DNA of 64,000 nt from the sequence record OR532817.1. One strand, 5' to 3'. This document shows positions 1-64,000 of this stretch, piece by piece. The notes beneath the pieces are model-generated. The model did no database searches, was not told the origin of the DNA, and saw only the letters and a program-made list of their open reading frames with translations. The translations under genes and the position numbers were made by a program. The stretch's first letter is position 1, and every line of letters begins with the position of its first letter.

Positions 1-497
1 GACGAGAGAATGTTCTCTCATAGAAATGCGAAGAAGCCGAGTTTATCTGTCCCTGCGTGAGTGGGCTAACATTTGAATAGGACAATACGTAGATGAATGA
101 AAAAGGTTTAAAGGGAAGTATTTGATTCCCTGTAGTATAGTTAATGAGTTAGTACTGATTTAGATGTAATCATTGAGTAGTACTACTGTCGCAAAGGGAA
201 ACCTTTGGCTTCCATGGGGAGTGATGACAGAAGGGCATTATCCTCCATATAGAGTTACTGCTAATAACTCCGTAAGTTGGGTTGTGGCAAACCTCCTAAA
301 ATAAGTAATAACAGTACTACTGCTTGATGGATTTGTTACCCGTAGGTAGTACTGATTTTAATTTAAAGAATACCCTCCGCCAAGAAAGGTGCATGTAACT
401 TGAACATGTGAACTACGGGAACAGTACTGAACCATTCAGTACTGATTCCTCTCCAAATTTTGGATACAATAATGCTAGGCTTCAGTTAGTACTGAGT

Positions 498-612
498 GAG
501 AATGATAATGATTCTCATTTGAATTGGATGAGAACGATTCTCATTTACTATTGCAAATGATAATAGATTGCATTTACGAATGGTTCTCATTCGCAGATGA
601 TAATGATTCTTA
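498..612. promoter_or_regulatory. Cluster of five Fur-box-like 7-1-7 repeats
   Basis: TGATAATGATTCTCA 503-517, TGAGAACGATTCTCA 529-543, TGATAATGATTCTTA 598-612; weaker copies 558-572 and 575-589; compare Fur consensus TGATAAT-n-ATTATCA. Confidence 0.7.
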
Positions 613-747
613 TTCAAAATTGATTTTTCCGATTTTTTCCATTAGTCCCCCTTCAGCGTAGGGTTAATTTTTCCCCTGCCGAATCGGTTTTATATTTTCA
701 AAATCTGGATTAATCATATCAGTACTAACCCAGATAAACAATACCCC

Positions 748-762
748 TTTACAAATCTTTAC
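748..762. promoter_or_regulatory. CpxR-type tandem box
   Basis: TTTAC-AAATC-TTTAC, the reverse complement of GTAAA-N5-GTAAA. Confidence 0.55.
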
Positions 763-788
763 AAAAAGATTCTAAATGCGAATACAAA

Positions 789-803
789 TGATAATGATTC
801 TCA
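789..803. promoter_or_regulatory. Fur-box-like site
   Basis: TGATAATGATTCTCA. Confidence 0.7.
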
Positions 804-811
804 TTTACAGT

Positions 812-860
812 ACTGAATACTTTTCCCCACGCTCTGGCGTCTCCGGTTCCTCCCGTCTAT
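812..860 (-). ncRNA. Two-hairpin sRNA-like element, copy 1
   Basis: Minus-strand TTGACT (889-894)/TATAAT (867-872); core hairpin ACGC-CAGA-GCGT then GGGG; no ORF. Confidence 0.5.
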
Positions 861-962
861 ATAAACATTATACAGTACTGAAATATTAAGTCAATACTAT
901 TTTTTCAAAAAGATTAAAATAAAATACTTGCAATCCTGATATTATTATATTATAATGTTTAC

Positions 963-1010
963 AGTACTGAGAAAGTGCTTTTGCCCGCTAGGGTGCGGGG
1001 GAGTATGCGT
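963..1010 (+). ncRNA. Two-hairpin sRNA-like element, copy 2
   Basis: TTGCAA (928)-17-TATAAT (951); AGTACT-GAGAA-AGTGCT; GCCC-GCTA-GGGT-GCGG. Confidence 0.55.
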
Positions 1011-1014
1011 TAAA

Positions 1015-1029
1015 TGAGAATGATAATCA
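1015..1029. promoter_or_regulatory. Fur-box-like site between convergent sRNA copies 2 and 3
   Basis: TGAGAATGATAATCA. Confidence 0.7.
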
Positions 1030-1039
1030 TTTACAGTAC

Positions 1040-1080
1040 TGGACGGATTTTCCCACCCTCGGGGGTCTCTTTTTGTCTAT
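1040..1080 (-). ncRNA. Two-hairpin sRNA-like element, copy 3
   Basis: Minus-strand TTGATA (1109-1114)/TATAAT (1087-1092); ACCC-CCGA-GGGT-GGGA. Confidence 0.5.
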
Positions 1081-1119
1081 GTGGTAATTATACAGTACTG
1101 GAATACTATATCAAGTCTC

Positions 1120-1134
1120 TTTACAAATCTTTAC
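1120..1134. promoter_or_regulatory. CpxR-type tandem box
   Basis: TTTACAAATCTTTAC. Confidence 0.55.
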
Positions 1135-1228
1135 AATCCACCCGGGGAGATTTATCTTTACAATAAAAGTACTTGCATAATTCTTTCAGTACTGCTATTA
1201 TATATTCATACCAAACAGGAGAACTACC

Positions 1229-1399
1229 ATGAAATACGCGTACTCTTATTTTATTGTAAACGGTGAACGTTTGACCATCGGCCAGGCAGCGGTAAAGCAT
1301 GAAATCATTTGCGATGATCTGGCAAAGATGCTACCAGGTGAAACGCAAGAGTTTTACAAGGGCTTTCAGAAAGTCACTGTAACACGTTGTGAAGATTGA
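1229..1399 (+). CDS. Hypothetical protein (56 aa, not in ORF track)
   Basis: Promoter at 1173, RBS CAGGAG, MKYAYSYFIVNGE...RCED*. Confidence 0.75.
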   Translation: MKYAYSYFIVNGERLTIGQAAVKHEIICDDLAKMLPGETQEFYKGFQKVTVTRCED

Positions 1400-1464
1400 T
1401 CCAGTATTAGGGGTAGGAATACCCCTAAAACGTCCTGTAACGCATTATAAGAGGTTTTTATAAT

Positions 1465-1692
1465 ATGGCTATAGAAGTTAACGCTGGGGATATAAAGGCG
1501 GCTGTACTGCGTACCCTGAAAGCATACGGCAGAAAGCTGAATGATCGCAACGTTCCCTATTATTTCCTTGCTGCTACTCATAAAATGGCAATCGCTGAGG
1601 CTCGCGGGTGGCTGAATGATCGCAGTACTGTAAAGAGTACCAGAACAAGAAACGCAATTGAGCGATGGATAAAAGAATTAAATCATTTCTAA
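1465..1692 (+). CDS. Hypothetical protein
   Basis: 75-aa ORF with plausible composition; weak RBS. Confidence 0.6.
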   Translation: MAIEVNAGDIKAAVLRTLKAYGRKLNDRNVPYYFLAATHKMAIAEARGWLNDRSTVKSTRTRNAIERWIKELNHF

Positions 1693-1764
1693 TAGTTCAG
1701 TTATGGAATCAGTACTGATTCCCTGTTTAGTACTGAAATTATAAGGGGAGTTAATTAATTCCCC

Positions 1765-1779
1765 TTTACAAATCTTTAC
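1765..1779. promoter_or_regulatory. CpxR-type tandem box
   Basis: TTTACAAATCTTTAC, 10 bp upstream of the -35 of sRNA copy 4. Confidence 0.6.
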
Positions 1780-1823
1780 AAAAGAATGGTTGACATAGTA
1801 TCCCAGTACTGGTATTATGTATT

Positions 1824-1872
1824 CATAGACAGAACAAGTCTTTGGCCCACCGGGTGCGGAGGAGTATCTATT
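1824..1872 (+). ncRNA. Two-hairpin sRNA-like element, copy 4
   Basis: TTGACA (1790)-17-TATTAT; AGAC-AGAACAA-GTCT; GCCC-ACC-GGGT-GCGGAGGAGTATCTAT. Confidence 0.65.
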
Positions 1873-1880
1873 AGATTGAA

Positions 1881-1901
1881 TGATAATGATAATGATTCTC
1901 A
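1881..1901. promoter_or_regulatory. Overlapping Fur-box-like sites between convergent sRNA copies 4 and 5
   Basis: TGATAATGATAATGATTCTCA. Confidence 0.75.
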
Positions 1902-1914
1902 TTTACTGTACTGA

Positions 1915-1965
1915 ATATATTTCCGCACCCTTTTGGGCTTTTCGATTACTTTCTACTTGTTAATA
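1915..1965 (-). ncRNA. Two-hairpin sRNA-like element, copy 5
   Basis: Minus-strand TTGCAT...TATACT; GCCC-AAAA-GGGT-GCGGAA. Confidence 0.5.
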
Positions 1966-1998
1966 AGTATACCATAATCAGTACTGAATGCAATGGTC

Positions 1999-2013
1999 TT
2001 TACAAATCTTTAC
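1999..2013. promoter_or_regulatory. CpxR-type tandem box
   Basis: TTTACAAATCTTTAC. Confidence 0.55.
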
Positions 2014-2110
2014 AAAAGAAAATAATTATAAAAAGTACTGAAAAAGTACTTGACGCAATAATGTAGTACTGGCATAATACATCCATACCAAACAGAACGG
2101 AGTAACTAAA

Positions 2111-2398
2111 ATGTTTAATGAAAATGATCATATTGTTAAAGAGTTTTCTTTCAGTAAGCCTATCCATTTAGAAAACGGTGAAACGCTGGACAATAAATTT
2201 TATGGTAGTATTATTAAGCGTTATACATCGCGGAGTAGTACTGGAATTTTGTGGGAAGTGAATAAACAGTACAATGGTAATTCGCTGGTTGTCAATGAGT
2301 GGGAAAGTTATGCAGTAGCTGAAATGGATTTTTCTAACTTTATTACTGAATCTTTGAACGATGATATCTTTTACAAGTTCACAGCGGAAAGGGTTTAA
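2111..2398 (+). CDS. Hypothetical protein
   Basis: Own promoter at 2049, RBS GGAG. Confidence 0.8.
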   Translation: MFNENDHIVKEFSFSKPIHLENGETLDNKFYGSIIKRYTSRSSTGILWEVNKQYNGNSLVVNEWESYAVAEMDFSNFITESLNDDIFYKFTAERV

Positions 2399-2518
2399 AA
2401 AGTTTTAAAGAGTACTTGACAACATAAACCAGTACTGTATAATGTATTGCATAGAAAGGAGATTCCATTATTCTGGAATCTCCGATAAAACAAACTAATC
2501 GGTGAAGGAGTAATTGCC

Positions 2519-3127
2519 ATGAATGTTATCGATACCATCTATTCTAAATCTTTTATCGAACTGAATGAAGAGCAGAAAGAAAAAGCAATTGATATTATGC
2601 GGGAAATTGAAAATCAGGACACTACCCCTTATTGGTCAATTGATCTTGTTAACCAGATGAAAGAAAAATTAGTACAATATGGAATTGATGATTCTGAAAT
2701 TTTGTGGTCTGGATTTTGTTCACAGGGAGACGGTGCAAGTATCAGCACTGAATCAATTAATACTGAGATGTTTTTACGTAAGGTAAAAGCGTGGTCTAAA
2801 TTTAAAGGCTTGCGTAAATTCATCTCCGAAGAAACTATTTCTTTGAGTGTTCGCCGGGTGAGCCATCATTACTATCATGAATATTGTGTTAGTGGTAATG
2901 TTGAAATTGCTTATTGTGAAGATGTTACCGCCAAACAAGAACAATTAGTGGACGATTTGCAAACTTTGATCACAAATACTATTCGTGATTTGTCTCGTGA
3001 ATTGTATAAAGATTTAGGGAATGAAAACGATTATCATAACAGCGATGAAGCATTGATTGAATTGATTAATGCAAATGATTATCATTTCAAAGTTAACAGT
3101 ACTGGCGACGTGTTAGGACTTGCATAA
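2519..3127 (+). CDS. Hypothetical protein, WSGFxSQGDGA motif family
   Basis: Promoter 2416, leader hairpin 2458-2483, RBS AAGGAG; motif recalled from phage/plasmid hypotheticals. Confidence 0.8.
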   Translation: MNVIDTIYSKSFIELNEEQKEKAIDIMREIENQDTTPYWSIDLVNQMKEKLVQYGIDDSEILWSGFCSQGDGASISTESINTEMFLRKVKAWSKFKGLRKFISEETISLSVRRVSHHYYHEYCVSGNVEIAYCEDVTAKQEQLVDDLQTLITNTIRDLSRELYKDLGNENDYHNSDEALIELINANDYHFKVNSTGDVLGLA

Positions 3128-3215
3128 TGACTAAATTATATATTCGTTTCTGTTTTGCCTGGTACTTGTATAATCTGCAAAATGGTTATCCAGGGAAATA
3201 GTACTGATATACTGT

Positions 3216-3247
3216 AAAACGTCCTGTAAACGATTATGGGACGTTTT
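3216..3247. repeat. AAAACGTCC-N14-GGACGTTTT inverted repeat
   Basis: Near-identical copy at 11407-11438; partial copies 1427-1457 and 16062-16092. Confidence 0.85.
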
Positions 3248-3318
3248 AAGGAATATTAGTACAATGTTAGTACTGAATGATTTAAACGCCTTACAGTGGC
3301 TTACAGGAGATTATATCA

Positions 3319-3531
3319 ATGGCTAAATGTACTATTTGTAATAAAGAAATTATTCTTTCCCCTAGTGCAGAGGAACGAGCTAAAAAGTACGGCGGAAAAG
3401 CCAGCGACTACACAAAACTCTTTACTACTCATGCGACTTGTGCTGTTAATAAAAGTTCAAATGCCAACATTGAATTAATGCGTAAAATCAATAATGATTT
3501 TATTAATTCCTGTAAAAAAGTACTTGCATAA
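3319..3531 (+). CDS. Small putative Zn-binding protein
   Basis: CxxC (CTIC) and HxxC (HATC); RBS CAGGAG. Confidence 0.75.
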   Translation: MAKCTICNKEIILSPSAEERAKKYGGKASDYTKLFTTHATCAVNKSSNANIELMRKINNDFINSCKKVLA

Positions 3532-3610
3532 AGTTTTCAGTACTGGCATAATACATCTATACCAAACAAAAAGGGAATCAGTGCTGATTCCAAGATAAGG
3601 AGTAACTGAA

Positions 3611-3925
3611 ATGAGTACTAAAGAACTGAATGTAACTACCAACACTTATAAGATGTTAGGCGGTCGGATGTTGCGTGATTATTACGCAATTGAAATCGAA
3701 GAACGCGAATTACCCGAAGATAAACACTATTGGGAAAGTGGTGTGAGTCCTCTGTTACGGGTAACAACGTCTAAGCATGTTTTCTTTACTTCTCGCATTC
3801 ATGTTAATAAGCGTGTCGAATTGACTTTCTCGTTTAGTGGAAGCTATAAAGATTATGAGATATTAAATGATCATATCGTTATCAGCAAATTTATTCAAAT
3901 GTATGGTGCGGATTCTTTACTTTAA
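3611..3925 (+). CDS. Hypothetical protein
   Basis: Promoter 3524, leader hairpin, RBS AAGGAG. Confidence 0.8.
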   Translation: MSTKELNVTTNTYKMLGGRMLRDYYAIEIEERELPEDKHYWESGVSPLLRVTTSKHVFFTSRIHVNKRVELTFSFSGSYKDYEILNDHIVISKFIQMYGADSLL

Positions 3926-4011
3926 GTACTTGACAATTCGATCCAGTACTGTATAATGTATTACACCAAAGGGGATACATAGTGTATCCCTGATATAAAG
4001 GAGTAGCGACT

Positions 4012-4371
4012 ATGCGAGCTTTTAACGTTTATAAGAATGACAAGAAAATTGACGTTGTTTATTATTCCGAAGTAATGACGGCAAAAGAAGTAACCGATTT
4101 GCTGAATAGCCGTGGTGAATACAACGGCGAAGTAAAAGCATTTCGGTCATTGAATAGTGCGAATATTCGCACAGTACTGAAAAATGCTAAAACTGTTTTA
4201 TTCAATGATGACGAATATTTTAATAAAGATGTTACGGGTATTAAAAACCTGGAAGATCTGAAAAGCCTTATTGGTATTAAAGGCAACGTATACAAAGTGG
4301 GGGAAGTCGGATCTCGCCATGAATATAAATTAGCCAATAGTGATTATAAATTTTCAATCCTGGTAATGTAA
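4012..4371 (+). CDS. Hypothetical protein
   Basis: Promoter 3930, leader hairpin, RBS AAGGAG. Confidence 0.8.
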   Translation: MRAFNVYKNDKKIDVVYYSEVMTAKEVTDLLNSRGEYNGEVKAFRSLNSANIRTVLKNAKTVLFNDDEYFNKDVTGIKNLEDLKSLIGIKGNVYKVGEVGSRHEYKLANSDYKFSILVM

Positions 4372-4372
4372 T

Positions 4373-4576
4373 ATGAAAGTTTATATTTTGGAAGTGGAAG
4401 AATGTAATTCATATTCTTACAGTGGTACACTATCACGCGTGGAGGCTGTATTTGCCAGTGAGAAAGAAGCCCACGCCGCCGGGATTTAAAAAGTAAAAGA
4501 AGGCTATGAAGGTTATAGCGTCGATGCTTATGATATTCAGGGCGATCTTTCAGTACTGTTAAAGGAATTAAAATAA
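4373..4576 (+). pseudogene. Small ORF interrupted by an in-frame TAA
   Basis: MKVYILEV...HAAGI*(4487-4489)KVKEGYEG...LKELK*; frame continues to a stop overlapping the next ATG. Confidence 0.65.
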
Positions 4577-4791
4577 TGGAATATGAATTAATATATCATA
4601 CTCGATTATATGTTATTTTCTTTGAAATAACGTTATGGGGAGTAAAGGCAACGATTTATAATAAAGACGTTGCCGACGATCAAGAATGGATCGTTGTTGC
4701 AGAAGATAAAACGCCTCATGATTCGTTAAGTACTGATTTTAAATTATGCCGTGAATTATTAAAGAGTATAAGAAAAGATAATAATATATAA
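4576..4791 (+). CDS. Hypothetical protein
   Basis: TAATG coupling, RBS AAGGA. Confidence 0.7.
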   Translation: MEYELIYHTRLYVIFFEITLWGVKATIYNKDVADDQEWIVVAEDKTPHDSLSTDFKLCRELLKSIRKDNNI

Positions 4792-4794
4792 AAC

Positions 4795-4822
4795 AAAGGG
4801 GATCAATCGATCCCCTTTTTGT
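4795..4822. terminator. Bidirectional intrinsic terminator
   Basis: AAAGGGGATC-AATC-GATCCCCTTTTTT. Confidence 0.85.
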
Positions 4823-4842
4823 TTCAGTACTGAATTAATAAT

Positions 4843-4905
4843 AGATACACTACGGCACCCTATGGGTCAGTGCCTTGTGTCCGGCTTATGTGGTTATTAT
4901 GCCAG
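4843..4905 (-). ncRNA. Two-hairpin sRNA-like element, copy 6
   Basis: Minus-strand TTGACT-17-CATAAT; GCC-GGACACAA-GGC; ACCC-ATA-GGGT-GCCGTAGTGTATCTAT; points into the 4795 terminator. Confidence 0.65.
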
Positions 4906-4934
4906 TACTGCGAACATAAGTCAATAGATGATTT

Positions 4935-4949
4935 GTAAAGAAGTGTAAA
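4935..4949. promoter_or_regulatory. CpxR-type tandem box
   Basis: GTAAA-GAAGT-GTAAA, 11 bp upstream of the minus-strand -35 of copy 6. Confidence 0.6.
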
Positions 4950-5152
4950 TGCACAGGAAGCGTTTTAAGGCGTTAATCTGTTGCTGGTGGCTGATAGTAC
5001 AGAGAAGTGTTTTAGATTGATTGTAGGCCGTTGTAGGCGTTTATAGATAGTAAAGTACTGATAATGTTTAATGATCCTGGTATGTGCAAATTATTTTAAT
5101 TTTTTTCGTATTGGGTATTGACGGATTATGTCAGTACTGGCATAATGTATCA

Positions 5153-5220
5153 CATAGAGCGACGGGCAAGACAAGTAGTCAACCTGTAAGACATACGAAA
5201 ACCAGGTGACGTTGCACTGA
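5153..5220 (+). ncRNA. Candidate three-way-junction small RNA
   Basis: TTGACG (5118)-17-CATAAT; stems GCGACG/CGTTGC, GAC/GTC, ACCTG/CAGGT; no ORF. Confidence 0.45.
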
Positions 5221-5286
5221 TTCAGTACTGAATAATACATAACATCTAAATGTTGACAGTACTAAAAAATGTAGTATAATGATTAA

Positions 5287-5460
5287 CAGAAAGAAGCAAT
5301 CCAGTAAGCATGGATTAGTGATAAACGTAGGCCGGAATCACGAAAAACTTTCAAGGAAATACCCTTGTATAAAAAGGGAAGCGTTAAGCGTAGAACGTAA
5401 ACGCGAAAATCCTAGCCTTGAACTGAAAAAGTAAACAAGGCAATTACAGAAAAAAGATTT
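5287..5460 (+). ncRNA. Candidate multi-hairpin A-rich RNA or long leader
   Basis: TTGACA (5253)/TATAAT (5275); stems AATCCA/TGGATT, GTGAT/ATCAC, CAAGG/CCTTG, CCTTG/CAAGG; no + strand ORF. Confidence 0.35.
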
Positions 5461-5552
5461 AAAAAAGTAGTTGACAAGTACTAACGAGAATGAGATAATC
5501 TCTCTCGTTGAAACAAACAAACAATCTTAATCAAAACTTAAAGGTGAATAAA

Positions 5553-6053
5553 ATGGCTAAACTGAATTCTGTTGTTGTTGCTCTGATCGCTGGTGATATC
5601 GCTGCTCTGAATGCTTCTTTCGCGTCGGTATCGATGGAAGATATGAAAACTGTTCGTAACAACTTTAACGATTTTTACTCTAAATTCAAAGCTGCAAATG
5701 AAGCGGCGGAAGCGGCGGCAAAAGAGCGTAAAGCACAGATCGAAACCGAAACGAAAGAACTGGTAGACGCCCTGGTAACTGCTGGCCTGGATCTGGAAAT
5801 GGCCGCCGAAGTCGCCAGCCAGAAAATGGCGGTGAAATATCCCGAACTGGCTCCGAAGTCGGGAACTGGTAAAACCTGGTCGTTTGAAACCGTATTCGTT
5901 AACGTTGACGGTGAAAAACTGGAAATTGGCACCAAAGGCAACAAAGGCAGTATGAAAGCACTGGCGGCGGCACGCGAAGCAATTGCCGCTGGCAAATACA
6001 AAGATCGTGCTGAATGGATCGCCGCTCACGCCTGGACTGAAACCGAAGCGTAA
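5553..6053 (+). CDS. H-NS-like protein (putative)
   Basis: N-terminal coiled-coil pattern resembles H-NS (SMEDMKT...EAAEAAAKERKAQI...LVTAGLDLE vs TLETLEE...AAAAEVEERTRKL...LIADGIDPN); GKTWS vs H-NS TKTWT; strongly biased codons; promoter 5471; RBS AAGGTG. Confidence 0.5.
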   Translation: MAKLNSVVVALIAGDIAALNASFASVSMEDMKTVRNNFNDFYSKFKAANEAAEAAAKERKAQIETETKELVDALVTAGLDLEMAAEVASQKMAVKYPELAPKSGTGKTWSFETVFVNVDGEKLEIGTKGNKGSMKALAAAREAIAAGKYKDRAEWIAAHAWTETEA

Positions 6054-6075
6054 TAATTCAGTACTGTAATAATTA

Positions 6076-6105
6076 GCCTCCTGTAATTAGGAGGCTTTTT
6101 ATTTT
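6076..6105 (+). terminator. Intrinsic terminator
   Basis: GCCTCCT-GTAATT-AGGAGGC-TTTTTATTTT. Confidence 0.9.
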
Positions 6106-6189
6106 GTTCAAAAAAATATTTTAATTTATTTTTTGAACGGACTTAAAAAATCGGATATAATAATAAAGGGTGTTAATTACAGAGACCCC

Positions 6190-6300
6190 CATAGTGTTCG
6201 CTACGCTCACATAATGATCTTACTCGTTGCACTCGTAAGATCATTATCCAATCGGCCTTTGGCTATTTCTTTTTGATTTCCTACGGAAACCAAACGAAAC
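6190..6300. repeat. Serial hairpin array
   Basis: GTG-TTCGCTACGCT-CAC; ATAATGATCTTAC-TCGTTGCACTC-GTAAGATCATTAT; TTTGATTTC-CTACG-GAAACCAAA. Confidence 0.6.
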
Positions 6301-6669
6301 CACCAGCAAAGGCAGATCCCATTATTTGATTTAGTTAGTACTGCAATGAATTAGTTTAATCGCACTACAAAGCAATCAATCCCTTTTGTAATAGCTCATA
6401 GAACGCAATAAGACGCGTTTAAATGACTTCCCTATGTAATGCCATTCCTTTTTAATAAGTCCTCTTAAAACGCGTTACAGTTCGTTATACGGCGTTTAAT
6501 AATACTCATCATTTCTTTTTCAAAAAGTACTTGCATTAATGATCCAGTACTGCAATAATGTACTCACTGAAACGCAGTAAGCGAAGTAAGTAAATGCAAA
6601 TAAGTACTTGACAAAGTGTTGTAGTACTGGCATAATGAATACATCAAAACGATTAAGGAGAAACACCAA

Positions 6670-7143
6670 ATGTTAAAACTTCATAAAGTACTTGATAACG
6701 CAGTTGTAACCGACTTTTTCCTGTCTCTTAATAACGAACCGAAAACAGCGAAGGAAATTGTTTTGAGTGGTTACATTGCCAGCAAGTCAGAGATCGCACA
6801 TTTGGAAAGTGCTTTCAAGTGTGGGGATGTATTGTACAGAAAAATGCAAAATACCATCGAAGATTTGCAATATATCAATTTACGTGATATTGTAGACAAT
6901 AAATTAGATATTTCAGAAGAAGCACGCGAAAACCTGGTAAGTAAATTATGTTACCGCTGCCGAACTGCAAAATGGAATCGCATTCGTAGTATTATTACTT
7001 ACGATTTAAGTAAGATCGATTCTAAATCAATTCTTGAACGTATGTTATTAAATTTGCAAAGCAATGAATGGTTTTATACTGCTGCCCAATCTCATAGCGA
7101 AGAAATTGCATATATTCGTGATTATGTAATTTACAGCAAGTAA
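6670..7143 (+). CDS. Hypothetical protein
   Basis: Tandem promoters 6531 and 6608, RBS AAGGAG. Confidence 0.85.
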   Translation: MLKLHKVLDNAVVTDFFLSLNNEPKTAKEIVLSGYIASKSEIAHLESAFKCGDVLYRKMQNTIEDLQYINLRDIVDNKLDISEEARENLVSKLCYRCRTAKWNRIRSIITYDLSKIDSKSILERMLLNLQSNEWFYTAAQSHSEEIAYIRDYVIYSK

Positions 7144-7216
7144 TTAATAATTGATTAGCCATCAATAAAGCTGGTGGCTAATAGAATATTAATAACCTGT
7201 TAGGAGAATAATCTTT

Positions 7217-55785: not shown

Positions 55786-55794
55786 ATTTCTCTT

Positions 55795-55960: not shown

Positions 55961-56010
55961 TTTAAAACATTATTGAATTCAATAATTAATATTATTATGG
56001 TTTTAAAGAA

Positions 56011-56622: not shown

Positions 56623-56645
56623 GTTCAAATAAGGAAAACGATTTC

Positions 56646-57164
56646 ATGGAAAAGAAGAAAAATAAACACGCGGTGCATTTCAGTACAAGAAAAAATGATC
56701 TATGGACAACACCAAAACCATTGTTTGATAAACTAAATGCTTTGTGGAATTTTACAGTAGATGTTGCTTGCAGTCATGAAACAGCTTTGTGTCTTAAACA
56801 CTACACACCAGAAGATGATGGTTTATCACAGGACTGGAGTAACGAAACATTTTGGTTAAATCCACCTTATAGTGATTTATCTCCTTGGTTATCAAAAAGC
56901 GTTGAAGACTATAACAGAGGTGCTACTGGTTTGATTTTGGTTCCAGCAAGAACTGATACCAGAGCTTTTCAGAATTTTGCTTCTCCTTTTTGTGATGCTA
57001 TGTGTTTTATAAAAGGAAGGCTTAAATTTGGTAATCCACTAAAACCGAATGATAAACTATCATCAGCACCATTCCCTTCTTGCATTATAGTACTGGATAA
57101 GAATCTAACACAAGCGAAAATAGATTGCCTAAAATCTTTAGGAAACACTATGGTTAACATATGA
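56646..57164 (+). CDS. dam: Phage DNA N6-adenine methyltransferase
   Basis: W.TP..LF, FTVDVA, WLNPPYS, LVPARTDT motifs of the phage Dam family. Confidence 0.9.
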   Translation: MEKKKNKHAVHFSTRKNDLWTTPKPLFDKLNALWNFTVDVACSHETALCLKHYTPEDDGLSQDWSNETFWLNPPYSDLSPWLSKSVEDYNRGATGLILVPARTDTRAFQNFASPFCDAMCFIKGRLKFGNPLKPNDKLSSAPFPSCIIVLDKNLTQAKIDCLKSLGNTMVNI

Positions 57165-57715
57165 ATAAATGTATAATTACTTTTGGTAGAATAAATCCAA
57201 TTCATTTAGGTCATGGGATTTTATTCAATAAAGTACAAGATATTAGTACTGAATTAAATGCAGATTTTCGAATTTATCTCAGTACTACACAAGATCCAAA
57301 GAAAAATCCACTTCCACCTAATCTAAAACAATATTACACTTCAAATTTTTATCCAAACATTAAAGATGTATTGAGTACTGAAAGTAATGTAACTAATATT
57401 ATGCAAGATTTGGATTCTCAGTACAGTGATATTATTTTTGTTTGTGGATCAGATCGAATAAATTCCTTTAAAAAAGCACTTGACAGTGCCAATGGAAAAT
57501 TATATAATTTCGATTCAATACAAGTAATTCAGGCTGGGATTGAAAGAGAATGTAGCAAATATAGTAGTACTGTAATGCGTTCGTATGCACTTGATGGTGA
57601 TTACAACTCATTTAGTACCTTTTTACCTGGAAAAGATGTTTATTTAAAAGAACAGCTATTTGAAGACGTACAGAGATACATGAGAGATGGGTATAATGGT
57701 AGCAAAAGGAAGTAA
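57161..57715 (+). CDS. HIGH-motif nucleotidyltransferase (cytidylyltransferase-like)
   Basis: TFGRINPIHLGH, KNPL, VCGSDR, SST.MR motifs. Confidence 0.8.
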   Translation: MNKCIITFGRINPIHLGHGILFNKVQDISTELNADFRIYLSTTQDPKKNPLPPNLKQYYTSNFYPNIKDVLSTESNVTNIMQDLDSQYSDIIFVCGSDRINSFKKALDSANGKLYNFDSIQVIQAGIERECSKYSSTVMRSYALDGDYNSFSTFLPGKDVYLKEQLFEDVQRYMRDGYNGSKRK

Positions 57716-58364
57716 AAAAGGAGATCTGGTGTATGGAATAGGTATTAATGACGTATATGGTGATTGTATAAGAACTAGTGAATTTATAATTGTTTATAGT
57801 GCATGGAAAGGTATGTTACAAAGATGCTATTCTCCTATATGGTTAGAAAAACATCCTAGTTATATTGGGACTAAAGTATGTGATGAATGGAAATATTATT
57901 CCAATTACAAGAGTTGGCATTTAAACAATTACATTGAAGGATATGAATTGGATAAAGATATTATTGATGGAAAATCTAAAATTTATTCACCATATACATG
58001 CTCGTTCGTACCTCCATTAATTAATACATGTATATTGGATGGTGGTAATACTAGCTATTCTTCTCCATATCCACTGGGTGTTTCTTATCATAAGAAAGCG
58101 AAACAAATGAAAAATGAACGTTCACGCCCATATGAAACTAATATAACTCTTTATGGTAAAAGAAAAAACTTAGGTTCATTTAAAACACCAGAAGAAGCAC
58201 ATAAAGCATGGCAATTTACAAAACGTGATTATTTATTGGAATTGATTAATAAGTACTGTAATGATGTAGTACCAGAAGTAATTCAAGGGCTTCAACGACG
58301 TGTTGATATTCTCAATTATGATATTAAAAATAGCAGAGAAACCAAATCGCTGAGTAAAGTATAA
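57696..58364 (+). CDS. HNH-type homing endonuclease with AP2-like C-terminus (putative)
   Basis: VYGIGIND, W..ML.RCY, VCDEW, LDKDII...KIYSP.TC.FVP..IN, GVSYHK, LGSFKTPEEAH.AW. Confidence 0.7.
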   Translation: MVAKGSKKGDLVYGIGINDVYGDCIRTSEFIIVYSAWKGMLQRCYSPIWLEKHPSYIGTKVCDEWKYYSNYKSWHLNNYIEGYELDKDIIDGKSKIYSPYTCSFVPPLINTCILDGGNTSYSSPYPLGVSYHKKAKQMKNERSRPYETNITLYGKRKNLGSFKTPEEAHKAWQFTKRDYLLELINKYCNDVVPEVIQGLQRRVDILNYDIKNSRETKSLSKV

Positions 58365-58417
58365 AAATATTAATACATGATTATTTAATGTATTAATATT
58401 TTTTTAGAGGGTATAAA

Positions 58418-58708
58418 ATGGTATTATTCAACATAGCAGCATTACATTGGGATAATAATGAAAAAACTGGATTTCGTCAAATCTCTGTTACTTATGAAGG
58501 TAAACAAATCATAAGTATTATCTCTAATAAAACCCTTGGGATATGGGGTTCTCGAATAGTACCTCTTGGATTCAGTTATAATAAAGATGAAGTACAAATG
58601 TTAAGTACTTTATATAAGAATATAGAGTGTATTATGAATTTTCTTGAACAAGATATAGTACTTAATCAGGATGTAGTACTTGACTTTTTGGAAAATATTA
58701 ATGTATGA
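58418..58708 (+). CDS. Hypothetical protein
   Basis: RBS GAGG. Confidence 0.75.
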   Translation: MVLFNIAALHWDNNEKTGFRQISVTYEGKQIISIISNKTLGIWGSRIVPLGFSYNKDEVQMLSTLYKNIECIMNFLEQDIVLNQDVVLDFLENINV

Positions 58709-58949
58709 TATAACTTTTGTCTTTCAAGAAGCATGGCTATCAGGCATTTATGATTTAGAAGTACTCGATGGTATTAAAATGTGGATTATAAAGAGTTCGA
58801 TCCCTTTTAGTACAGTAACAAAAAGCAAATTAAAATACGCAAGTGATGAATATTTAGATTGTACAATAAAAACAAAAAACATTAACTATAACGGAAAAAT
58901 AATTTTTCTTGGTAATGAACATTTGTTTTATATTTTTAAAGAGGAATAA
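58680..58949 (+). CDS. Hypothetical protein
   Basis: Coupled ORF; start uncertain. Confidence 0.6.
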   Translation: MTFWKILMYDITFVFQEAWLSGIYDLEVLDGIKMWIIKSSIPFSTVTKSKLKYASDEYLDCTIKTKNINYNGKIIFLGNEHLFYIFKEE

Positions 58950-58951
58950 AA

Positions 58952-59557
58952 ATGAATACTAATAGTAATACTTATTTTCGTTATCTACGTCTGGGTCTAT
59001 CTCTTCGTCCAGTACGTGGTTATTGTGATGATCTTGAAGATTTCGAATACGCGTGGGCAGTTCATTGTGAAAATGTACAATACGTACTTAATGATTTTGG
59101 TGAATTTGAAAAAGATAATGATTCAACTTCAATGATGAATGCGATTGACAATCTTGATTGTATTGCTAATTCAGATCGTCATGAAACAGTACTTGCAGTA
59201 CAGAAATATATTGAAAGTAATCTGAGCAAGCCAGTTTGGTGCATGGTAAGCACCGAAGAACAACTTGGAATTACTTTTGGTACTGAAGATGGTTATGTTG
59301 CACAATTGATTATGGATTTCAGTACTGAAGAAAAATTCATTTCTTATCGTGATAAAATTTATCAAGCACTATTACGCAGTGGTATCAGTGAAGATCAAGT
59401 ACCAGAAATTGCACCAATGAAAGATTTCTTCCTTATCCCAAGTGATGAAAAATATGATGCAATGTTTTATAAAATGAATGTACCAGGTGTTATTGTTGAA
59501 CATTTTGATGATGATAATACTGAGTGGTTGGACTTGGGTGATGACGAAGACGATTGA
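58952..59557 (+). CDS. Acidic hypothetical protein
   Basis: RBS GAGGA; D/E-rich. Confidence 0.85.
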   Translation: MNTNSNTYFRYLRLGLSLRPVRGYCDDLEDFEYAWAVHCENVQYVLNDFGEFEKDNDSTSMMNAIDNLDCIANSDRHETVLAVQKYIESNLSKPVWCMVSTEEQLGITFGTEDGYVAQLIMDFSTEEKFISYRDKIYQALLRSGISEDQVPEIAPMKDFFLIPSDEKYDAMFYKMNVPGVIVEHFDDDNTEWLDLGDDEDD

Positions 59558-59643
59558 TGATTTTTATTGCTTTATAGAAAATACAACTGCACTATTAGAG
59601 TATTTTGACAATACTCCTTATCATAAAATAATAGTGCAGGTTT

Positions 59644-59970
59644 ATGATGATCTTTTTTATGAATATGGTAACTATTTTGATTGGTTCGCACATCTTAGTA
59701 CATAACTTTTTATTACTTCTTAATAACAAAATACAAATTAACTATATTTTCAGAGATGATCCTTTATATAAAAATGAAATCTCTGATATATACAAGAATA
59801 TGACAACTGAAATCTATCATTATTACATGAATAAAAAATTCAAGTGCTATTATATCAAAGCAATTGTAAAACCAGCAAGGTTATATATATGCACTAAAAA
59901 TGATATGGTTAGTAAAGTTATAGATATCAAAGATTTAAAAGATGAGGTTCTTAGGGATGAATGGTACTGA
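59644..59970 (+). CDS. Hypothetical protein
   Basis: ORF in the coupled run; start uncertain. Confidence 0.5.
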   Translation: MMIFFMNMVTILIGSHILVHNFLLLLNNKIQINYIFRDDPLYKNEISDIYKNMTTEIYHYYMNKKFKCYYIKAIVKPARLYICTKNDMVSKVIDIKDLKDEVLRDEWY

Positions 59971-60256
59971 ATGTGTGAAAAAGAAAATAGAATTTATACA
60001 AATGACATGTAAGGCAATTTTCAATTTAGCACACAATACCAATATGCCAACCTTGTTCAAAGAAGAATTATTATTAAGTACTGAGATTATTTTTGAAGAA
60101 TATTTCAGTACTAAATTGTATTTAAAATATGGTAACTTTTACAAAATTCACGGCTTTACTATATGTAGTTCAAATGGAAGTGTCCATATTACAACTTCAT
60201 ACGGCTATTTCGAATTAACAGAAAGTACTGTGAAAAATATATATGAATATCCATAA
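59942..60256 (+). CDS. Family C-like protein
   Basis: EEYFSTKLYLKYG; start uncertain. Confidence 0.65.
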   Translation: MRFLGMNGTECVKKKIEFIQMTCKAIFNLAHNTNMPTLFKEELLLSTEIIFEEYFSTKLYLKYGNFYKIHGFTICSSNGSVHITTSYGYFELTESTVKNIYEYP

Positions 60257-60273
60257 AAAATGAGAGTAAATTA

Positions 60274-60474
60274 ATGAAAAAATGTTCGTGTTGTGGATCT
60301 ACTCAAATTGCACGTTTTCGATTAGATTCTGATTGGGCTGTTGGTTGTGGTGATTTCTACCCAGTTAATGATGATTCAGAATATACTGAAGAACAACTGA
60401 AAGATTTTGATAATAGTTGGAGACCAGATTTTGAGTTTCTATATTGTTTGAATTGTAATTCGGTACAGGAATGA
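60274..60474 (+). CDS. Zn-ribbon-like small protein
   Basis: CSCC and CLNC. Confidence 0.7.
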   Translation: MKKCSCCGSTQIARFRLDSDWAVGCGDFYPVNDDSEYTEEQLKDFDNSWRPDFEFLYCLNCNSVQE

Positions 60475-60740
60475 TTAAACCACATTATCATTGTATTCAC
60501 TACTTAGGAACGACTATTTGTAATGAATTTACGAAAAATAAACATCATCAATTCAGTACTGTAATACGTGATATATTGTTATACATTGAAAAAGAATTAA
60601 CATTATTTTATAAAAATACCGTATATACTTATTGTAATAAAAAGTACAAAATACTCAATTTATCATTTGATGATAGAGGATTTTTATATGTAATGAGTAC
60701 TGAATATTATACTCATTTGGTTCTGCATACGGATTTATAA
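60471..60740 (+). CDS. Family C protein
   Basis: IEKELTLFYKN. Confidence 0.7.
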   Translation: MIKPHYHCIHYLGTTICNEFTKNKHHQFSTVIRDILLYIEKELTLFYKNTVYTYCNKKYKILNLSFDDRGFLYVMSTEYYTHLVLHTDL

Positions 60741-61009
60741 TGAACAAACAATTATTATACTGTAAAGTGGTTTATTACTTGACTAATTCAGTACTGAATA
60801 TGAATAACACACATTTTAACTATTCACTATGTATTAGAAGTATTTTAGATAACATAGAAGATGAACTAAATGTGTTATATACTGGAAAAACATTCACAAA
60901 AAACAATATCCGACACAAATGTAATGGTATTGTTATAACATATGGGCGTATATTTGCTTTATACGGTATACGTTACACTTGCTATTTTCATAGGGCTAAA
61001 TTTAAATGA
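60740..61009 (+). CDS. Family C protein
   Basis: IEDELNVLYTG. Confidence 0.7.
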   Translation: MNKQLLYCKVVYYLTNSVLNMNNTHFNYSLCIRSILDNIEDELNVLYTGKTFTKNNIRHKCNGIVITYGRIFALYGIRYTCYFHRAKFK

Positions 61010-61623
61010 AAACAGATTATTCAAAACTAAGAACAAAACTTTATGGAATTATAGAGGGGCTATCTCTAATCGATCCAAAGTACTATGAATTGCGTCGTTT
61101 ACTTGCATTCGCCGAACAATATCATTGTAATACACGAAAAGATGGTTCTGAAGAATTCTCTCATCAATTACAAATGCTTGGATTGGCTCTTACGCTTCAT
61201 GAATCGATGTGTAAGCCGTTTGAAGTATACATGGCAATTGTATCTCATGATTTAATCGAAGACTATCCAGAAGCTTCTGAAACGCTTGAGATGTTATTCC
61301 CTGATGTAATCCAATATAGTCGCAAACTGGCTAAATTTAAAGATTCAAATACTGATGAAGATTCGTACTATGGATACTTTAATCAGCTTGCTAATTGTCA
61401 AGTATGTTCAATTGTAAAACTCGTAGATAGAGTGCACAATTTGAGTACCGCACCTGGTGTATTCAGTACTGAAAAAATTATAAGTTATTGTGATGAAACT
61501 GATAAGTATTTCTTTGATATGATAAAAAAATCCAAAGTTATGTTCAATCAACGTTCAGTATATGAAGTTCTAAAATTCATGTTGAATACCGAAGTCAGTA
61601 CTATCAGGAATTTATTAAAATGA
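61006..61623 (+). CDS. HD-domain (p)ppGpp hydrolase-like protein (SpoT/Mesh1-type)
   Basis: A..YH....RKDG..F.H, HDLIED, VKLVDRVHNL. Confidence 0.8.
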   Translation: MKTDYSKLRTKLYGIIEGLSLIDPKYYELRRLLAFAEQYHCNTRKDGSEEFSHQLQMLGLALTLHESMCKPFEVYMAIVSHDLIEDYPEASETLEMLFPDVIQYSRKLAKFKDSNTDEDSYYGYFNQLANCQVCSIVKLVDRVHNLSTAPGVFSTEKIISYCDETDKYFFDMIKKSKVMFNQRSVYEVLKFMLNTEVSTIRNLLK

Positions 61624-61826
61624 AAATAGTTTTAGAATTTGCATTTATTATTTTTGGTTTCATTTGGTTCACTGCTATTTCAATTTTTGCTGGATATCTC
61701 ATTATTAAACCGGATATGTTGATTTTCTACTGGATTTTGACTTTAATTGCATTCATCAGTGTTGTCTATTTGTCTTATAAACTGGTATATCTATATGCAG
61801 ATGAAATCAAAAAATATAACACTTAG
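61620..61826 (+). CDS. Two-TM membrane protein
   Basis: Two hydrophobic segments. Confidence 0.7.
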   Translation: MKIVLEFAFIIFGFIWFTAISIFAGYLIIKPDMLIFYWILTLIAFISVVYLSYKLVYLYADEIKKYNT

Positions 61827-61933
61827 TTGGTTTTATGTTGAAAAGATTTAAAATCGATATTGAATAAACATTTCTCCTTGTGATATAATACTATATGTAA
61901 AAGGATTTTACATAAGCACAAGGAGAGTCAAAG

Positions 61934-62662
61934 ATGATAGATAATTTAGCATTTGCATCCGAAATGGCTAATCAGTTGAACATGAGTAATTTTCAGAGTC
62001 TTACACCAGTGATGGCGGAATATGCTGTTGCTCATGCCACCTGTGGTGAACAAGTTGGATCAGCAAATTTATTAGCTGATGTATTCAGTACTGTACAAAG
62101 TACCCAATACAGTGTTAAAATGTATAGGGATAAGTTTGTACAGTTGTATATGCTTGATGTAATAAAAGAAGAACCAGAATGGACTGATTTTATTATTGAA
62201 CGTAGGATTAGTGGTGTTTCTAATCCAGATAAAGATGCAGTACAAGTATTTGATGAAATACTTCAAGATGTATATAGTAATGAACAAAAAAGTCTAAATC
62301 AATACAATGTACGTTCTACCAAGACAGTGCTCGTGGGATTTGATGAAGATGAAGAATATTACTATTTTCGTTGTACTGAAGTAGATTTTAAATACGAAAC
62401 TCCCAGTACAGTTAAAGTTAAAGAATTTACTGAAAAGAGTAAAAACTTCAAAAAACATTCTTCTAATATTAGTAATATAGTTGGTTATAATAAAGATGGT
62501 ATTGACATATATCAATGGGTACACCCAAATAACTCAACTTATACCAGATGTTTAAAGAAACGTTATAATTTAAAACAAGAAGAATCATTTTATTTTAAGA
62601 TAAAGAAGCATTCCTATCAACGACCTGATGAATCAGTGTTACTTGGTATGATTTACTTCTGA
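61934..62662 (+). CDS. Hypothetical protein
   Basis: TG-TATAAT promoter at about 61880, RBS AAGGAG. Confidence 0.85.
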   Translation: MIDNLAFASEMANQLNMSNFQSLTPVMAEYAVAHATCGEQVGSANLLADVFSTVQSTQYSVKMYRDKFVQLYMLDVIKEEPEWTDFIIERRISGVSNPDKDAVQVFDEILQDVYSNEQKSLNQYNVRSTKTVLVGFDEDEEYYYFRCTEVDFKYETPSTVKVKEFTEKSKNFKKHSSNISNIVGYNKDGIDIYQWVHPNNSTYTRCLKKRYNLKQEESFYFKIKKHSYQRPDESVLLGMIYF

Positions 62663-62715
62663 TTTTAGTCGTCCAGTACAATATAAGTACTGGACATTTT
62701 TTTAAGGTAAAAAAA

Positions 62716-62994
62716 ATGAATATATTACAAAAAGTTAATCTATTTGGAAAAGCGTATACAAATGCTTTTTATGGTATTGATAAACGTTATGAATATGCTA
62801 ATTTTTTAAATAGAGAAATTGAATTTAGTGGAATGAATAGGTTATTGTCTGGTAAACGTGTAACTATTGTTTTTAATGGTTATCAGGGATATATTAATCA
62901 AATTCGTCATCTAGATGAGAAAATTTTTGCATACGTTTATACTAATAATGGAAATTTATTGATTAATTTATCTTTTTTGGAATTGATTGAATGA
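62716..62994 (+). CDS. Hypothetical protein (Family C-like)
   Basis: RBS AAGG. Confidence 0.7.
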   Translation: MNILQKVNLFGKAYTNAFYGIDKRYEYANFLNREIEFSGMNRLLSGKRVTIVFNGYQGYINQIRHLDEKIFAYVYTNNGNLLINLSFLELIE

Positions 62995-63275
62995 AATTAA
63001 TAGACCAAGTTATTCTTTATAAGAAAGTATTTGATTATATGGAAGATTTTCTTGATGGTACACATTATGAATGTTGCATTTATGTTACATGGAAAAAGAA
63101 TGTAATGGAAATAGAAAAAGCTACCATTTCTAAAATAGTGCGTATAAAAAGCCTTGATACTATTGGTACTATTATTGAACTTAATATAGGAAGATATTTT
63201 GCATTTTTTGGTGTAAAAGTACCTGAAAACGATTTTGCTCTTATAATTTCATTAGATGATATTGAGTTTCTTTGA
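62991..63275 (+). CDS. Hypothetical protein
   Basis: ATGA coupling. Confidence 0.7.
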   Translation: MKLIDQVILYKKVFDYMEDFLDGTHYECCIYVTWKKNVMEIEKATISKIVRIKSLDTIGTIIELNIGRYFAFFGVKVPENDFALIISLDDIEFL

Positions 63276-63304
63276 GTTTTATCTATTTGGTAATATAAAA
63301 TATT

Positions 63305-63616
63305 ATGGATAAATTACACAAAGCAGTATTATTTTTAAAAGCATATAGCTATGAGTACTTACAAAGTCATGGAAAATGGAATGGTAGTTATAAGGATTTA
63401 TATTCATCTGTTTTTCTTAATGAAGTAAATCTTGTGATATCAGAAGTACAAAAATTATATGAAAGAAAACTTGTGCATACGAGATTTGGTATTGGAATTA
63501 TTATTAGTATATTTTGCTTCACATACGGTTCCTTTTTAGTCGCAATAGAAACAATAGTAGAAGGCAAACCACAAACAATAGTATTAAAATTAAGTGAGAT
63601 ATATCTGGATGAATGA
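63305..63616 (+). CDS. Hypothetical protein (Family C-like)
   Basis: EVQKLYERK. Confidence 0.7.
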   Translation: MDKLHKAVLFLKAYSYEYLQSHGKWNGSYKDLYSSVFLNEVNLVISEVQKLYERKLVHTRFGIGIIISIFCFTYGSFLVAIETIVEGKPQTIVLKLSEIYLDE

Positions 63617-63881
63617 ACATTTTAATAGAATACAATTAATCACCCAACTTCTACAAATGGTTGATGACACATTTGATGAATTAAAAAATAATCTTATGAA
63701 TAAGAAAATCAAATGTAAGGTATATATGAATGATGGTGATTATTTCGATATGCGTGAAGTTGAAGTAACTGGAATTGTTACTAATATTACTTTGTATGAA
63801 TATGATCTAACTATTACAGTGAAAATCGACGAAGGTCGTGAATATTACGTTTGTAATCAACATATTGAGGTGGTTGAATGA
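63594..63881 (+). CDS. Hypothetical protein
   Basis: Coupled ORF. Confidence 0.7.
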   Translation: MRYIWMNEHFNRIQLITQLLQMVDDTFDELKNNLMNKKIKCKVYMNDGDYFDMREVEVTGIVTNITLYEYDLTITVKIDEGREYYVCNQHIEVVE

Positions 63882-64000
63882 GTTTAGTAGAAATCTATAA
63901 TGATTTAATGAATTTAGTACAAAATAATGAAGCATTTGAATATAAAGATCAGCGTTCAATTGGCGGTGGTTTGTATAGAATCTTTTCTTATCGAATGGCC
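63878..64000 (+). CDS. rnlA: RNA ligase 1 (T4 Rnl1-like), N-terminal fragment truncated by window end
   Basis: IYNDLMNLV...F.YKD..S.GG..YRIFSY resembles the T4 Rnl1 start (LFNNLMELC...FFY.D..SASGRTYRIFSY); RBS GAGGT. Confidence 0.7.
   Translation, partial: MSLVEIYNDLMNLVQNNEAFEYKDQRSIGGGLYRIFSYRMA

Follow-up and report, generated by a model that had tools for sequence, protein, structure and literature searches.

A symmetric AGTACT motif in the early promoters, beside the chromosome end and throughout the genes of RaK2-like jumbo phages

Window and genome context

The palindromic hexamer AGTACT is strongly over-represented in a stretch of 64,000 nucleotides of phage DNA, referred to here as the window, which is 100% identical to bases 124,001-188,000 of RCIP0023 (OR532817.1). 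RCIP0023 is a Klebsiella phage of the genus Alcyoneusvirus, a RaK2-like jumbo myovirus with a genome of 350 kb. Over the tested stretch, RaK2, K64-1, Muenster and KP13-7 show 95-98% identity. RaK2-like jumbo phages, whose genes and regulation are for the most part uncharacterised, are therapy candidates against Klebsiella, E. coli and plant pathogens. The window carries 154 complete annotated genes, all of them small, unnamed and located on the + strand, while a 155th gene, encoding RNA ligase 1, is cut by the window end. For genome-wide counts of AGTACT, the remainder of the RCIP0023 genome was added to the window.

The window can be divided into two zones. Window 1..20385 (+) is a direct terminal repeat with early genes, the first ~300 bp of which lie upstream of the window. 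This zone is dense in AGTACT and contains 153 of the 260 window sites, 100 being fully non-coding and a further 5 straddling a gene edge. Its assignment as terminal repeat follows from the mapping of Muenster and from an independent halving of sequencing depth. The Muenster record begins at a PhageTerm-predicted repeat of 20,030 bp; its position 1 corresponds to RCIP0023 123,701 (window -299), with the repeat ending on the right at window ~20,353. In X15, a publicly available run of high depth from a close relative, the contig word depth falls from ~3,800 to ~1,940 at the contig break 20,381/20,386. The non-coding leader of the repeat, at window 1..1228, has 15 AGTACT sites; 19-mers resembling Fur boxes are also located there, together with diverged repeat modules. 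At the right repeat boundary, a CAGTACTG site (20373..20378) is followed by short GTAC-containing repeats, all within ~20-80 bp of the boundary. The second zone, 20401..64000, consists of tightly packed small genes with dispersed sites, of which 103 are located inside coding sequences (CDS) and 4 are non-coding.

Enrichment of AGTACT

AGTACT occurs 260 times in the window (n=260), compared to 21.3 copies expected from base composition and 40.5 expected from an order-2 Markov model. With this 12-fold enrichment it is the only enriched palindromic hexamer, the runner-up being GAATTC with 1.9-fold. The three hexamers with the strongest over-representation in the window are CAGTAC, GTACTG and AGTACT, and CAGTACTG is found 88 times in the window against 0.5 expected, and 248 times in the whole genome. 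The first-pass annotation, made from the letters of the window alone, had counted 23 AGTACT in 1-2100, and a recount gives exactly 23. It had also claimed genome-wide enrichment. The result is stronger than this claim, as the 350-kb genome contains 954 copies versus 118 expected (about 8-fold) and each 10-kb bin is enriched, with 14-35 copies against 3.3 expected and a peak of 49-74 at 120-150 kb.

The frequent occurrence of the motif within coding regions, likewise proposed earlier, was confirmed: annotated CDS fully contain 151 of the window sites, a further 104 fall between genes, and the last 5 span a gene boundary. By reading frame, the sites in genes are distributed 70/27/54, and each of the three frames is enriched. 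When synonymous codons are shuffled per gene, 50.5 +/- 5.9 AGTACT are obtained (maximum 67 in 300 shuffles) versus 151 observed, a 3-fold excess with a z of about 17. Shuffling the codon order yields 19.5 +/- 4.3. Repeats make a small contribution: flanks at least 70% identical to those of a sibling site are present at 51 of the 260 sites, and the context of the other 209 is unique. Thus, the excess persists in the Markov and codon-shuffle comparisons, and the ratio of observed to expected sites does not approach 1 after control for codon usage and repeats.

The motif has also reshaped the encoded proteins, because both the dipeptide Ser-Thr (149 vs 72 expected) and its spelling as AGT-ACT (70 vs 21 expected from codon usage) exceed expectation. 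The reverse dipeptide Thr-Ser occurs 50 times. Val-Leu is spelled GTA-CTN in 75 cases, with 26 expected. The selection at the DNA level that had been postulated is therefore supported: the enrichment survives the codon and repeat controls, skews protein composition and, as described below, is kept in four genera despite turnover of the sites.

Other palindromic sites behave differently, and the statement that the phage avoids palindromic hexamers holds for most of them. Some 20 palindromic hexamers, including CTGCAG, CAGCTG, CTTAAG and GAGCTC, have zero copies in the window. GCGC is missing from the 350-kb genome against 219 expected copies, CGTACG is also absent from it, and CTAG reaches 0.29 of expectation. 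This depletion is a classic signature of restriction avoidance, with which the excess of AGTACT contrasts. A further over-represented word is the Chi octamer of E. coli, GCTGGTGG, with 16 copies on the + strand (0.8 expected) and 5 on the - strand (0.5 expected) of the RCIP0023 genome. In the phages 121Q and BF, CTGGTG-type hexamers likewise rank among the top words. The Chi excess could be a codon effect or provide protection from RecBCD.

Anatomy and symmetry of the motif

The fuller consensus is TTC-AGTACT-GAA, a sequence of 12 bp with two-fold symmetry, of which 31 perfect copies are present in the genome. The flank preferences are mirrored on both sides, with C at +/-1 at a frequency of about 0.5 and T at +/-2 and +/-3. 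G reaches only 0.06 at +/-1 and 13% at +/-3. The avoidance of G at +/-1 is common to all five sampled genomes. An AGTACT-centred perfect palindrome of 18 bp is located in a 5' leader at 1705..1722, and similar AGTACT-centred palindromes occur at 7518-7537, 11845-11862 and 18678-18701.

The symmetry of the flanks, in a window whose genes are all on one strand, suggests that the motif is read in double-stranded DNA by a symmetric protein and is not an RNA signal. A motif acting at the RNA level was ruled out on this basis; in addition, the stem would be too short. A search of Rfam gave no match.

Early promoters of the terminal repeat

A consensus scan of the + strand of the repeat yields 11 perfect (12/12) sigma-70 promoters and about as many with 11/12 matches. 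AGTACT is found in the spacer of 19 of the 21 strong early promoters, beginning 7-8 nt upstream of the start of the -10 element. A second AGTACT is present in 11 of the 21, located 5-7 nt (in one case 14 nt) upstream of the -35 start, and in 8 of these 11 promoters it overlaps the first T of the -35 element. Thus, symmetric sites overlap the core promoter, as would be expected of the operator of a dimeric regulator.

Pairs of boxes exactly 20 bp apart occur 18 times in the window, starting at 1168, 2045, 2411, 3519, 3925, 6526, 6603, 8249, 9844, 10148, 10854, 11787, 12300, 13081, 14667, 15575, 18631 and 19592. The two-box promoter at 2411..2443 (+) reads AGTAC-TTGACA, followed by a 16-nt spacer ending in AGTACTG and by TATAAT, with 12/12 matches. 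A second two-box promoter with a 12/12 match is located at 13081..13113 (+). The promoter at 8010..8038 (+) is an example with one box and comprises TTGACA, a spacer ending in AGTACTG and then G-CATAAT. In total, promoter boxes account for 72 of the 105 early sites that are not wholly within CDS. Beyond 20.4 kb, none of nine strong promoter-like sites has a spacer box. The first-pass annotation had overlooked that the first 20 kb are a terminal repeat, that about two thirds of its non-coding sites are promoter boxes and that the motif is a symmetric one of 12 bp.

The non-coding sites are under constraint. Compared to RaK2 (97.1% identity), they differ at 7 of 619 positions (1.1%); the change amounts to 4.6% in the flanks of these sites and to 3.5% in the remaining non-coding DNA. 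Overall, AGTACT is intact in RaK2 at 228 of 247 sites, compared to 86% of random hexamers.

The terminal repeat contains several other conspicuous elements. The Fur-box consensus (19 bp, at most 3 mismatches) is matched 5 times, with 0.19 matches expected, and each match falls in the non-coding leader of the repeat. These Fur-box-like sites are located at 498-516, 790-808, 1016-1034 and 1882-1906, as well as at RCIP0023 123,610-123,660 just upstream of the window. Most of them directly adjoin an AGTACTG, and 490-620 is a run of Fur-like hexamers. Judged by their sequence, these sites may serve iron-responsive control or the titration of Fur by a lytic phage. A repeated element with CTTTACAAATCTTTACAA is located just upstream of several early promoters (732-766, 1104-1138, 1749-1783, 1983-2017 and ~10,125-10,147) and could be an upstream promoter element or the site of another protein. 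A G+C-rich conserved hairpin of the GGGATAC...GTATCCC type is found in the 5' leader, at most ~15 nt past many early promoters and before the ribosome-binding site; examples are 3972-3990, 8295-8315 and 9555-9573, among similar ones. Two early genes have recognisable domains. The gene at 16095-16343 encodes a ParE-like toxin domain (Pfam PF24732, E = 2.4e-10) and is conserved in the Cronobacter phage GAP32, and the gene at 17026-17610 shows a weak match to a protein-kinase domain (E = 3e-4, below the Pfam cut-off).

The array at the chromosome end

In the densest AGTACT cluster of the 350 kb, six sites are packed into 150 bp, and three of them form the only triple with 10-bp phasing. This terminus array occupies RCIP0023 123,603-123,689, immediately upstream of the window, and stops 12 bp short of the left repeat boundary. 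Matching arrays are present in RaK2 and Muenster. In the Pectobacterium phage CBB, which belongs to Mimasvirus, four sites lie within 120 bp before the annotated repeat boundary, the last of them ending 16 bp short of it. GAP32 has a homologous terminus arrangement, and the junction sequence is conserved between Alcyoneusvirus and Mimasvirus. In these five phages (RCIP0023, RaK2, Muenster, CBB and GAP32), for which the repeat boundaries were taken from PhageTerm or the authors' annotation and, at the right boundary, from the halving of depth, a hexamer array like that of pac sites is found, with 4-6 sites within 100-120 bp and 12-16 bp from the boundary.

Dispersed sites within genes

In 20401..64000, synonymous shuffling gives 35.8 +/- 5.1 AGTACT versus the 103 observed in CDS. 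Outside the repeat, the density is ~2.4 sites per kb, corresponding to a mean spacing of about 400 bp, and the spacing is Poisson-like (coefficient of variation 0.96-0.98, Kolmogorov-Smirnov p > 0.2). No -10 element was found at the intragenic sites. A high and even density in genes, together with positional turnover between relatives, is characteristic of uptake sequences and Chi. The lowest density is observed in the tail-fibre/depolymerase block (RCIP0023 224,431-247,308, outside the window), which has 39 sites versus 55 expected (P = 0.014) and contains the four largest site-free gaps of the genome, 2.3-2.9 kb in length. This is consistent with a recent horizontal acquisition of DNA that is not yet enriched.

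The genes at ~39,400-52,240 form a tandem array of ~24 consecutive genes encoding 160-210 amino acids, and no Pfam match was obtained for the 8 members tested. From the similar sizes alone, the array looks like one paralogous family. For its member at 49,334-49,744, GAP32 has a clear counterpart, which is located at 25-30 kb.

Distribution in relatives, hosts and unrelated phages

The first-pass annotation had suggested a comparison with relatives, and enrichment is found in four genera, namely Alcyoneus-, Asterius-, Eneladus- and Mimasvirus. AGTACT ranks first among the hexamers in the E. coli phage 121Q (38 vs 7.5 expected), in the Serratia phage BF (67 vs 10.3) and in GAP32 (181 vs 10), the sample of the latter including two-box promoters. 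In CBB it is enriched with 89 copies versus 10.2 expected. No enrichment is seen in the Pseudomonas relative PA5oct (2 vs 10 expected), in which a substitute palindrome was looked for and not found, nor in T4 (12 vs 16.7 expected; GTAC 0.5-fold). Within a syntenic replication block of 23 kb with 64-69% nucleotide identity, 121Q shares 11 and BF 8 of the 55 RCIP0023 sites, and 5 are shared by both. Because few sites are shared and the density is kept, it is the density of the motif that is maintained and not its position.

A 50-kb sample of E. coli K-12 contains 3 AGTACT against 11.6 expected (0.06 per kb), which puts the density of the motif in the phage DNA about 45 times higher. This contrast makes the self/non-self mark suggested in the first-pass annotation plausible. 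In IMG/VR, TTGACA-N10-11-AGTACTGTATAAT occurs in 71 contigs of many viral families. Control hexamers at the same spacer position are found in 78 (GATACT), 110 (AGTAGA) and 10 (TCATGA) contigs. Contigs with a spacer box only show no genome-wide enrichment of AGTACT (1.18-fold, equal to the controls). The exact two-box promoter recurs in two unrelated T7-like metagenomic families; these IMG/VR contig families (loci L019-L032) have one conserved two-box promoter each and a mild AGTACT excess of 1.9-fold. No link between AGTACT and RaK2-like phages was found in the searched literature, which included the RaK2, CBB, Sharanji, Muenster and phAPEC6 papers, the GAP32 paper in Virology being outside the search.

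Candidate reader proteins

The first-pass annotation had proposed binding sites for a DNA-coating, packaging or ejection protein. The packaging part of this idea has gained real ground, since the array of highest density lies directly beside the boundary of the terminal repeat in both Alcyoneusvirus and Mimasvirus. No reader protein was identified. One lead resembles helix-turn-helix (HTH) proteins, namely the product of the second gene of the repeat (1465-1692), a basic protein of 75 amino acids with an isoelectric point of 10.3. By language model, it is placed next to HTH families, and HHpred matches to sigma factors are recorded in the Muenster annotation. A sigma-70-family factor encoded outside the window (RCIP0023 88,997-89,893) is conserved with CBB and GAP32 at 33% identity, and is implausible as the reader of a palindromic site. 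In CBB, the sigma-70-family gene is preceded by a non-coding stretch of 1.2 kb and a small HTH_37 gene.

A possible mechanism

AGTACT, in its fuller form TTC-AGTACT-GAA, may be the recognition site of a dimeric, clade-specific and most likely phage-encoded DNA-binding protein, a site that would be read in three contexts. This reading, derived from sequence patterns, is preferred tentatively and is given a little less than an even chance. We infer that a single symmetric protein, conserved in the enterobacterial RaK2-like clade, would read all sites. In the early promoters, it would occupy the spacer box upstream of -10 and often a second box at -35, 20 bp or two helical turns away. As the boxes overlap the core promoter, the bound protein would compete with or remodel the host RNA polymerase and thereby act as a switch of early genes, most simply shutting them off. 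The array of 4-6 sites located 12-16 bp before the left terminus could mark the site of end formation or packaging. The ~800 Poisson-spaced sites in genes would form a distributed mark of phage DNA for coating, protection, packaging or DNA entry. DNA-embedded inner-body proteins are described for the capsid of the relative phAPEC6, which speaks in favour of such a protein (PMC7247149).

Several points weigh against a dedicated phage protein. No DNA-binding domain emerged when 33 window proteins, plus one encoded outside the window, were scanned against Pfam or PHROG, and with three additional Atlas look-ups the HTH-like product of 1465-1692 was the only lead. This protein is confined to Alcyoneusvirus and one Yersinia phage, and the HTH_37 gene of CBB has no homologue in RCIP0023. 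A plain repressor would hardly be expected to have hundreds of tight binding sites within genes. The constraint per site is weak in genes, where the change compared to RaK2 is 2.0% versus 2.8% and is not significant alone. Furthermore, the recurrence of the exact two-box promoter in unrelated T7-like families would also fit a reader on the host side.

In a broader version, which appears rather doubtful, one phage protein, either virion-borne or early, would read ~1,000 sites as a self code, telling phage DNA from host DNA, timing the early promoters and defining or protecting the chromosome end. T4 achieves self-recognition via base modification. If true, the self code would couple DNA entry or packaging with transcription control and would be a sequence-based substitute for the modification used by T4.

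Alternative explanations

That the excess is a by-product of composition, codon usage, repeats, or a repair or mutation bias, without any function, is extremely improbable. GTAC by itself is enriched 2.5-fold genome-wide, AGT, ACT and GTA are frequent codons, and repeat modules are present in the first 2 kb, all of which could raise the count, but the 3-fold excess after synonymous shuffling in all frames, the 209 sites in unique contexts, the 3-fold better conservation of non-coding sites than of their surroundings and the enrichment in four genera, not seen in T4 or PA5oct of similar G+C, effectively refute this explanation. One-off neighbours are not depleted either (AGTATT 1.2, AATACT 0.98), and for this reason a very-short-patch type of repair drive is also unlikely. 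A target of DNA modification is unlikely too, though less remote. Here, a phage methyltransferase would mark AGTACT, and the mark would be selected for self/non-self distinction or for a methylation-dependent activity in promoters or end cutting, for which the Dam sites in P1 pac are a precedent. A palindromic hexamer is a typical methyltransferase target, and a phage in which restriction sites are otherwise avoided would run a risk by carrying ~1,000 unprotected sites of the ScaI type. The window encodes a candidate modifier, a DNA N6-adenine methyltransferase of the Dam family, at 56646..57164 (+; Pfam PF05869, E = 1.5e-27), which equals RaK2 ORF447 'dam' (gp447). For RaK2, two methyltransferases are reported, as is DNA that could be digested by methylation-tolerant enzymes only, which counts for this explanation (PMC3622015). 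Methylation alone, however, explains neither the 8-fold enrichment nor the fixed promoter register, the known family members are annotated as Dam (GATC) enzymes while GATC is not avoided here (0.78), and no deamination-type loss of the one-off neighbours is visible. Given the Dam-family enzyme, a methylation component may nevertheless act alongside a dedicated reader protein.

A host factor common to Enterobacterales, exploited by the phage to block cell division or titrated by its sites, is a quite unlikely reader. The obvious example is SlmA, whose binding site GTGAGTACTCAC has an identical AGTACT core (PMC3020112). Hosts from six enterobacterial genera are represented among the enriched phages, the Pseudomonas relative is not enriched, and the two-box promoter recurs in unrelated phage families. 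T4, however, infects E. coli, the host of the AGTACT-rich 121Q, and is not enriched. SlmA requires G1, T2, A4 and G5 as well as a purine at position 3 (PMC3020112). Only 1 of the 954 sites fits GTRAGYRCTYAC, and the G at +/-1 of the SlmA consensus is the base most avoided in the phage (6%), so that SlmA itself was rejected as the reader. The LexA box (CTGT-N8-ACAG) was rejected because the promoters have no ACAG partner, and the TrpR operator with its CTAG-containing GTACTAGT half-sites because CTAG (0.29-fold) and ACTAGT (0.09-fold) are depleted. About as improbable is an intrinsic element for RNA polymerase, in which the box would strengthen promoters as a spacer or extended -10 element and the genome-wide copies would weakly attract polymerase. 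The register to -10 and -35 is fixed across genera, AGTACTG places a TG beside the -10 element, and the 71 IMG/VR contigs show the arrangement in many viral families. On the other hand, control hexamers are equally common or commoner at this position, with the exception of TCATGA, and a generic sigma-70 spacer element was rejected since AGTACT is not over-used in phage promoters at large. Moreover, the GAP32 boxes lack the TG, the intragenic sites have no -10 element, and contigs with a spacer box only are not enriched genome-wide. Very improbable is a site of replication or recombination, such as a primase start or a nicking or topoisomerase site that is needed on both strands every few hundred bases. 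A palindrome would serve both strands, the spacing is uniformly Poisson-like at about 400 bp, and density is conserved while position is not; yet the promoter register and the terminus array would stay unexplained, T4 with its related replisome is not enriched, and known phage primases read trinucleotides.

Significance and comparison with known systems

A single 6-bp code is thus present in early promoters, beside the chromosome end and throughout genes, and it doubles the Ser-Thr content of the proteins. It bears on the switch-off of early genes, on end formation and on how presumably unmodified, AT-rich phage DNA could be told from host DNA. In metagenomes, AGTACT offers a simple sequence signature for the clade and for the terminal repeat. 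It is also a direct handle for capturing the proposed reader protein with an oligonucleotide, e.g., a TTCAGTACTGAA duplex.

Several known systems share features with the AGTACT sites. E. coli has 24-52 SlmA-binding sites for nucleoid occlusion in 4.6 Mb, which are located outside promoters (PMC3020112). Like the phage motif, these are 12-bp palindromes with an AGTACT core that are read by a dimer, dispersed over the chromosome and functional through their distribution. The phage flanks differ at positions required by SlmA, and ~1,000 sites are packed into 350 kb, partly in promoters.

The stoperators of cluster A mycobacteriophages, bound by the L5 repressor, are asymmetric 13-mers in about 30 orientation-linked copies and belong to a temperate immunity repressor. 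As proposed for AGTACT, the stoperator serves a single protein both as operator of the early promoter and in many dispersed copies, also in transcribed regions. In contrast to stoperators, AGTACT is palindromic and therefore has no orientation that could follow transcription, it is present in ~950 copies, and the phage is lytic. DNA uptake sequences of Neisseria, uptake signal sequences of Haemophilus and Chi are asymmetric cellular motifs that are read by the uptake or RecBCD machinery and have no link to promoters or chromosome ends. They resemble AGTACT as short motifs with approximately one copy per kb that lie in genes in all frames, shape peptides, keep their density despite turnover and mark the cell's own DNA, whereas the palindromic AGTACT has no strand orientation.

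P1 pac consists of TGATCA/G hexamer repeats with Dam sites, and these hexamers are confined to pac. The helically phased hexamers beside an end-forming cut and the possible link to adenine methylation are shared with the terminus array, but AGTACT also occurs in promoters and genome-wide. TF1 of SPO1 and p6 of phi29 are abundant phage proteins that coat the genome, favour early-promoter regions and switch early transcription. Under the proposed reading, AGTACT would likewise be served by a phage-encoded, genome-coating switch of early transcription. TF1 and p6 differ in recognising modified DNA or bendability instead of a strict hexamer, and no homologue was found here. Overall, the AGTACT system resembles stoperators, uptake sequences, SlmA/Noc sites and pac arrays and combines their features in a lytic jumbo phage.

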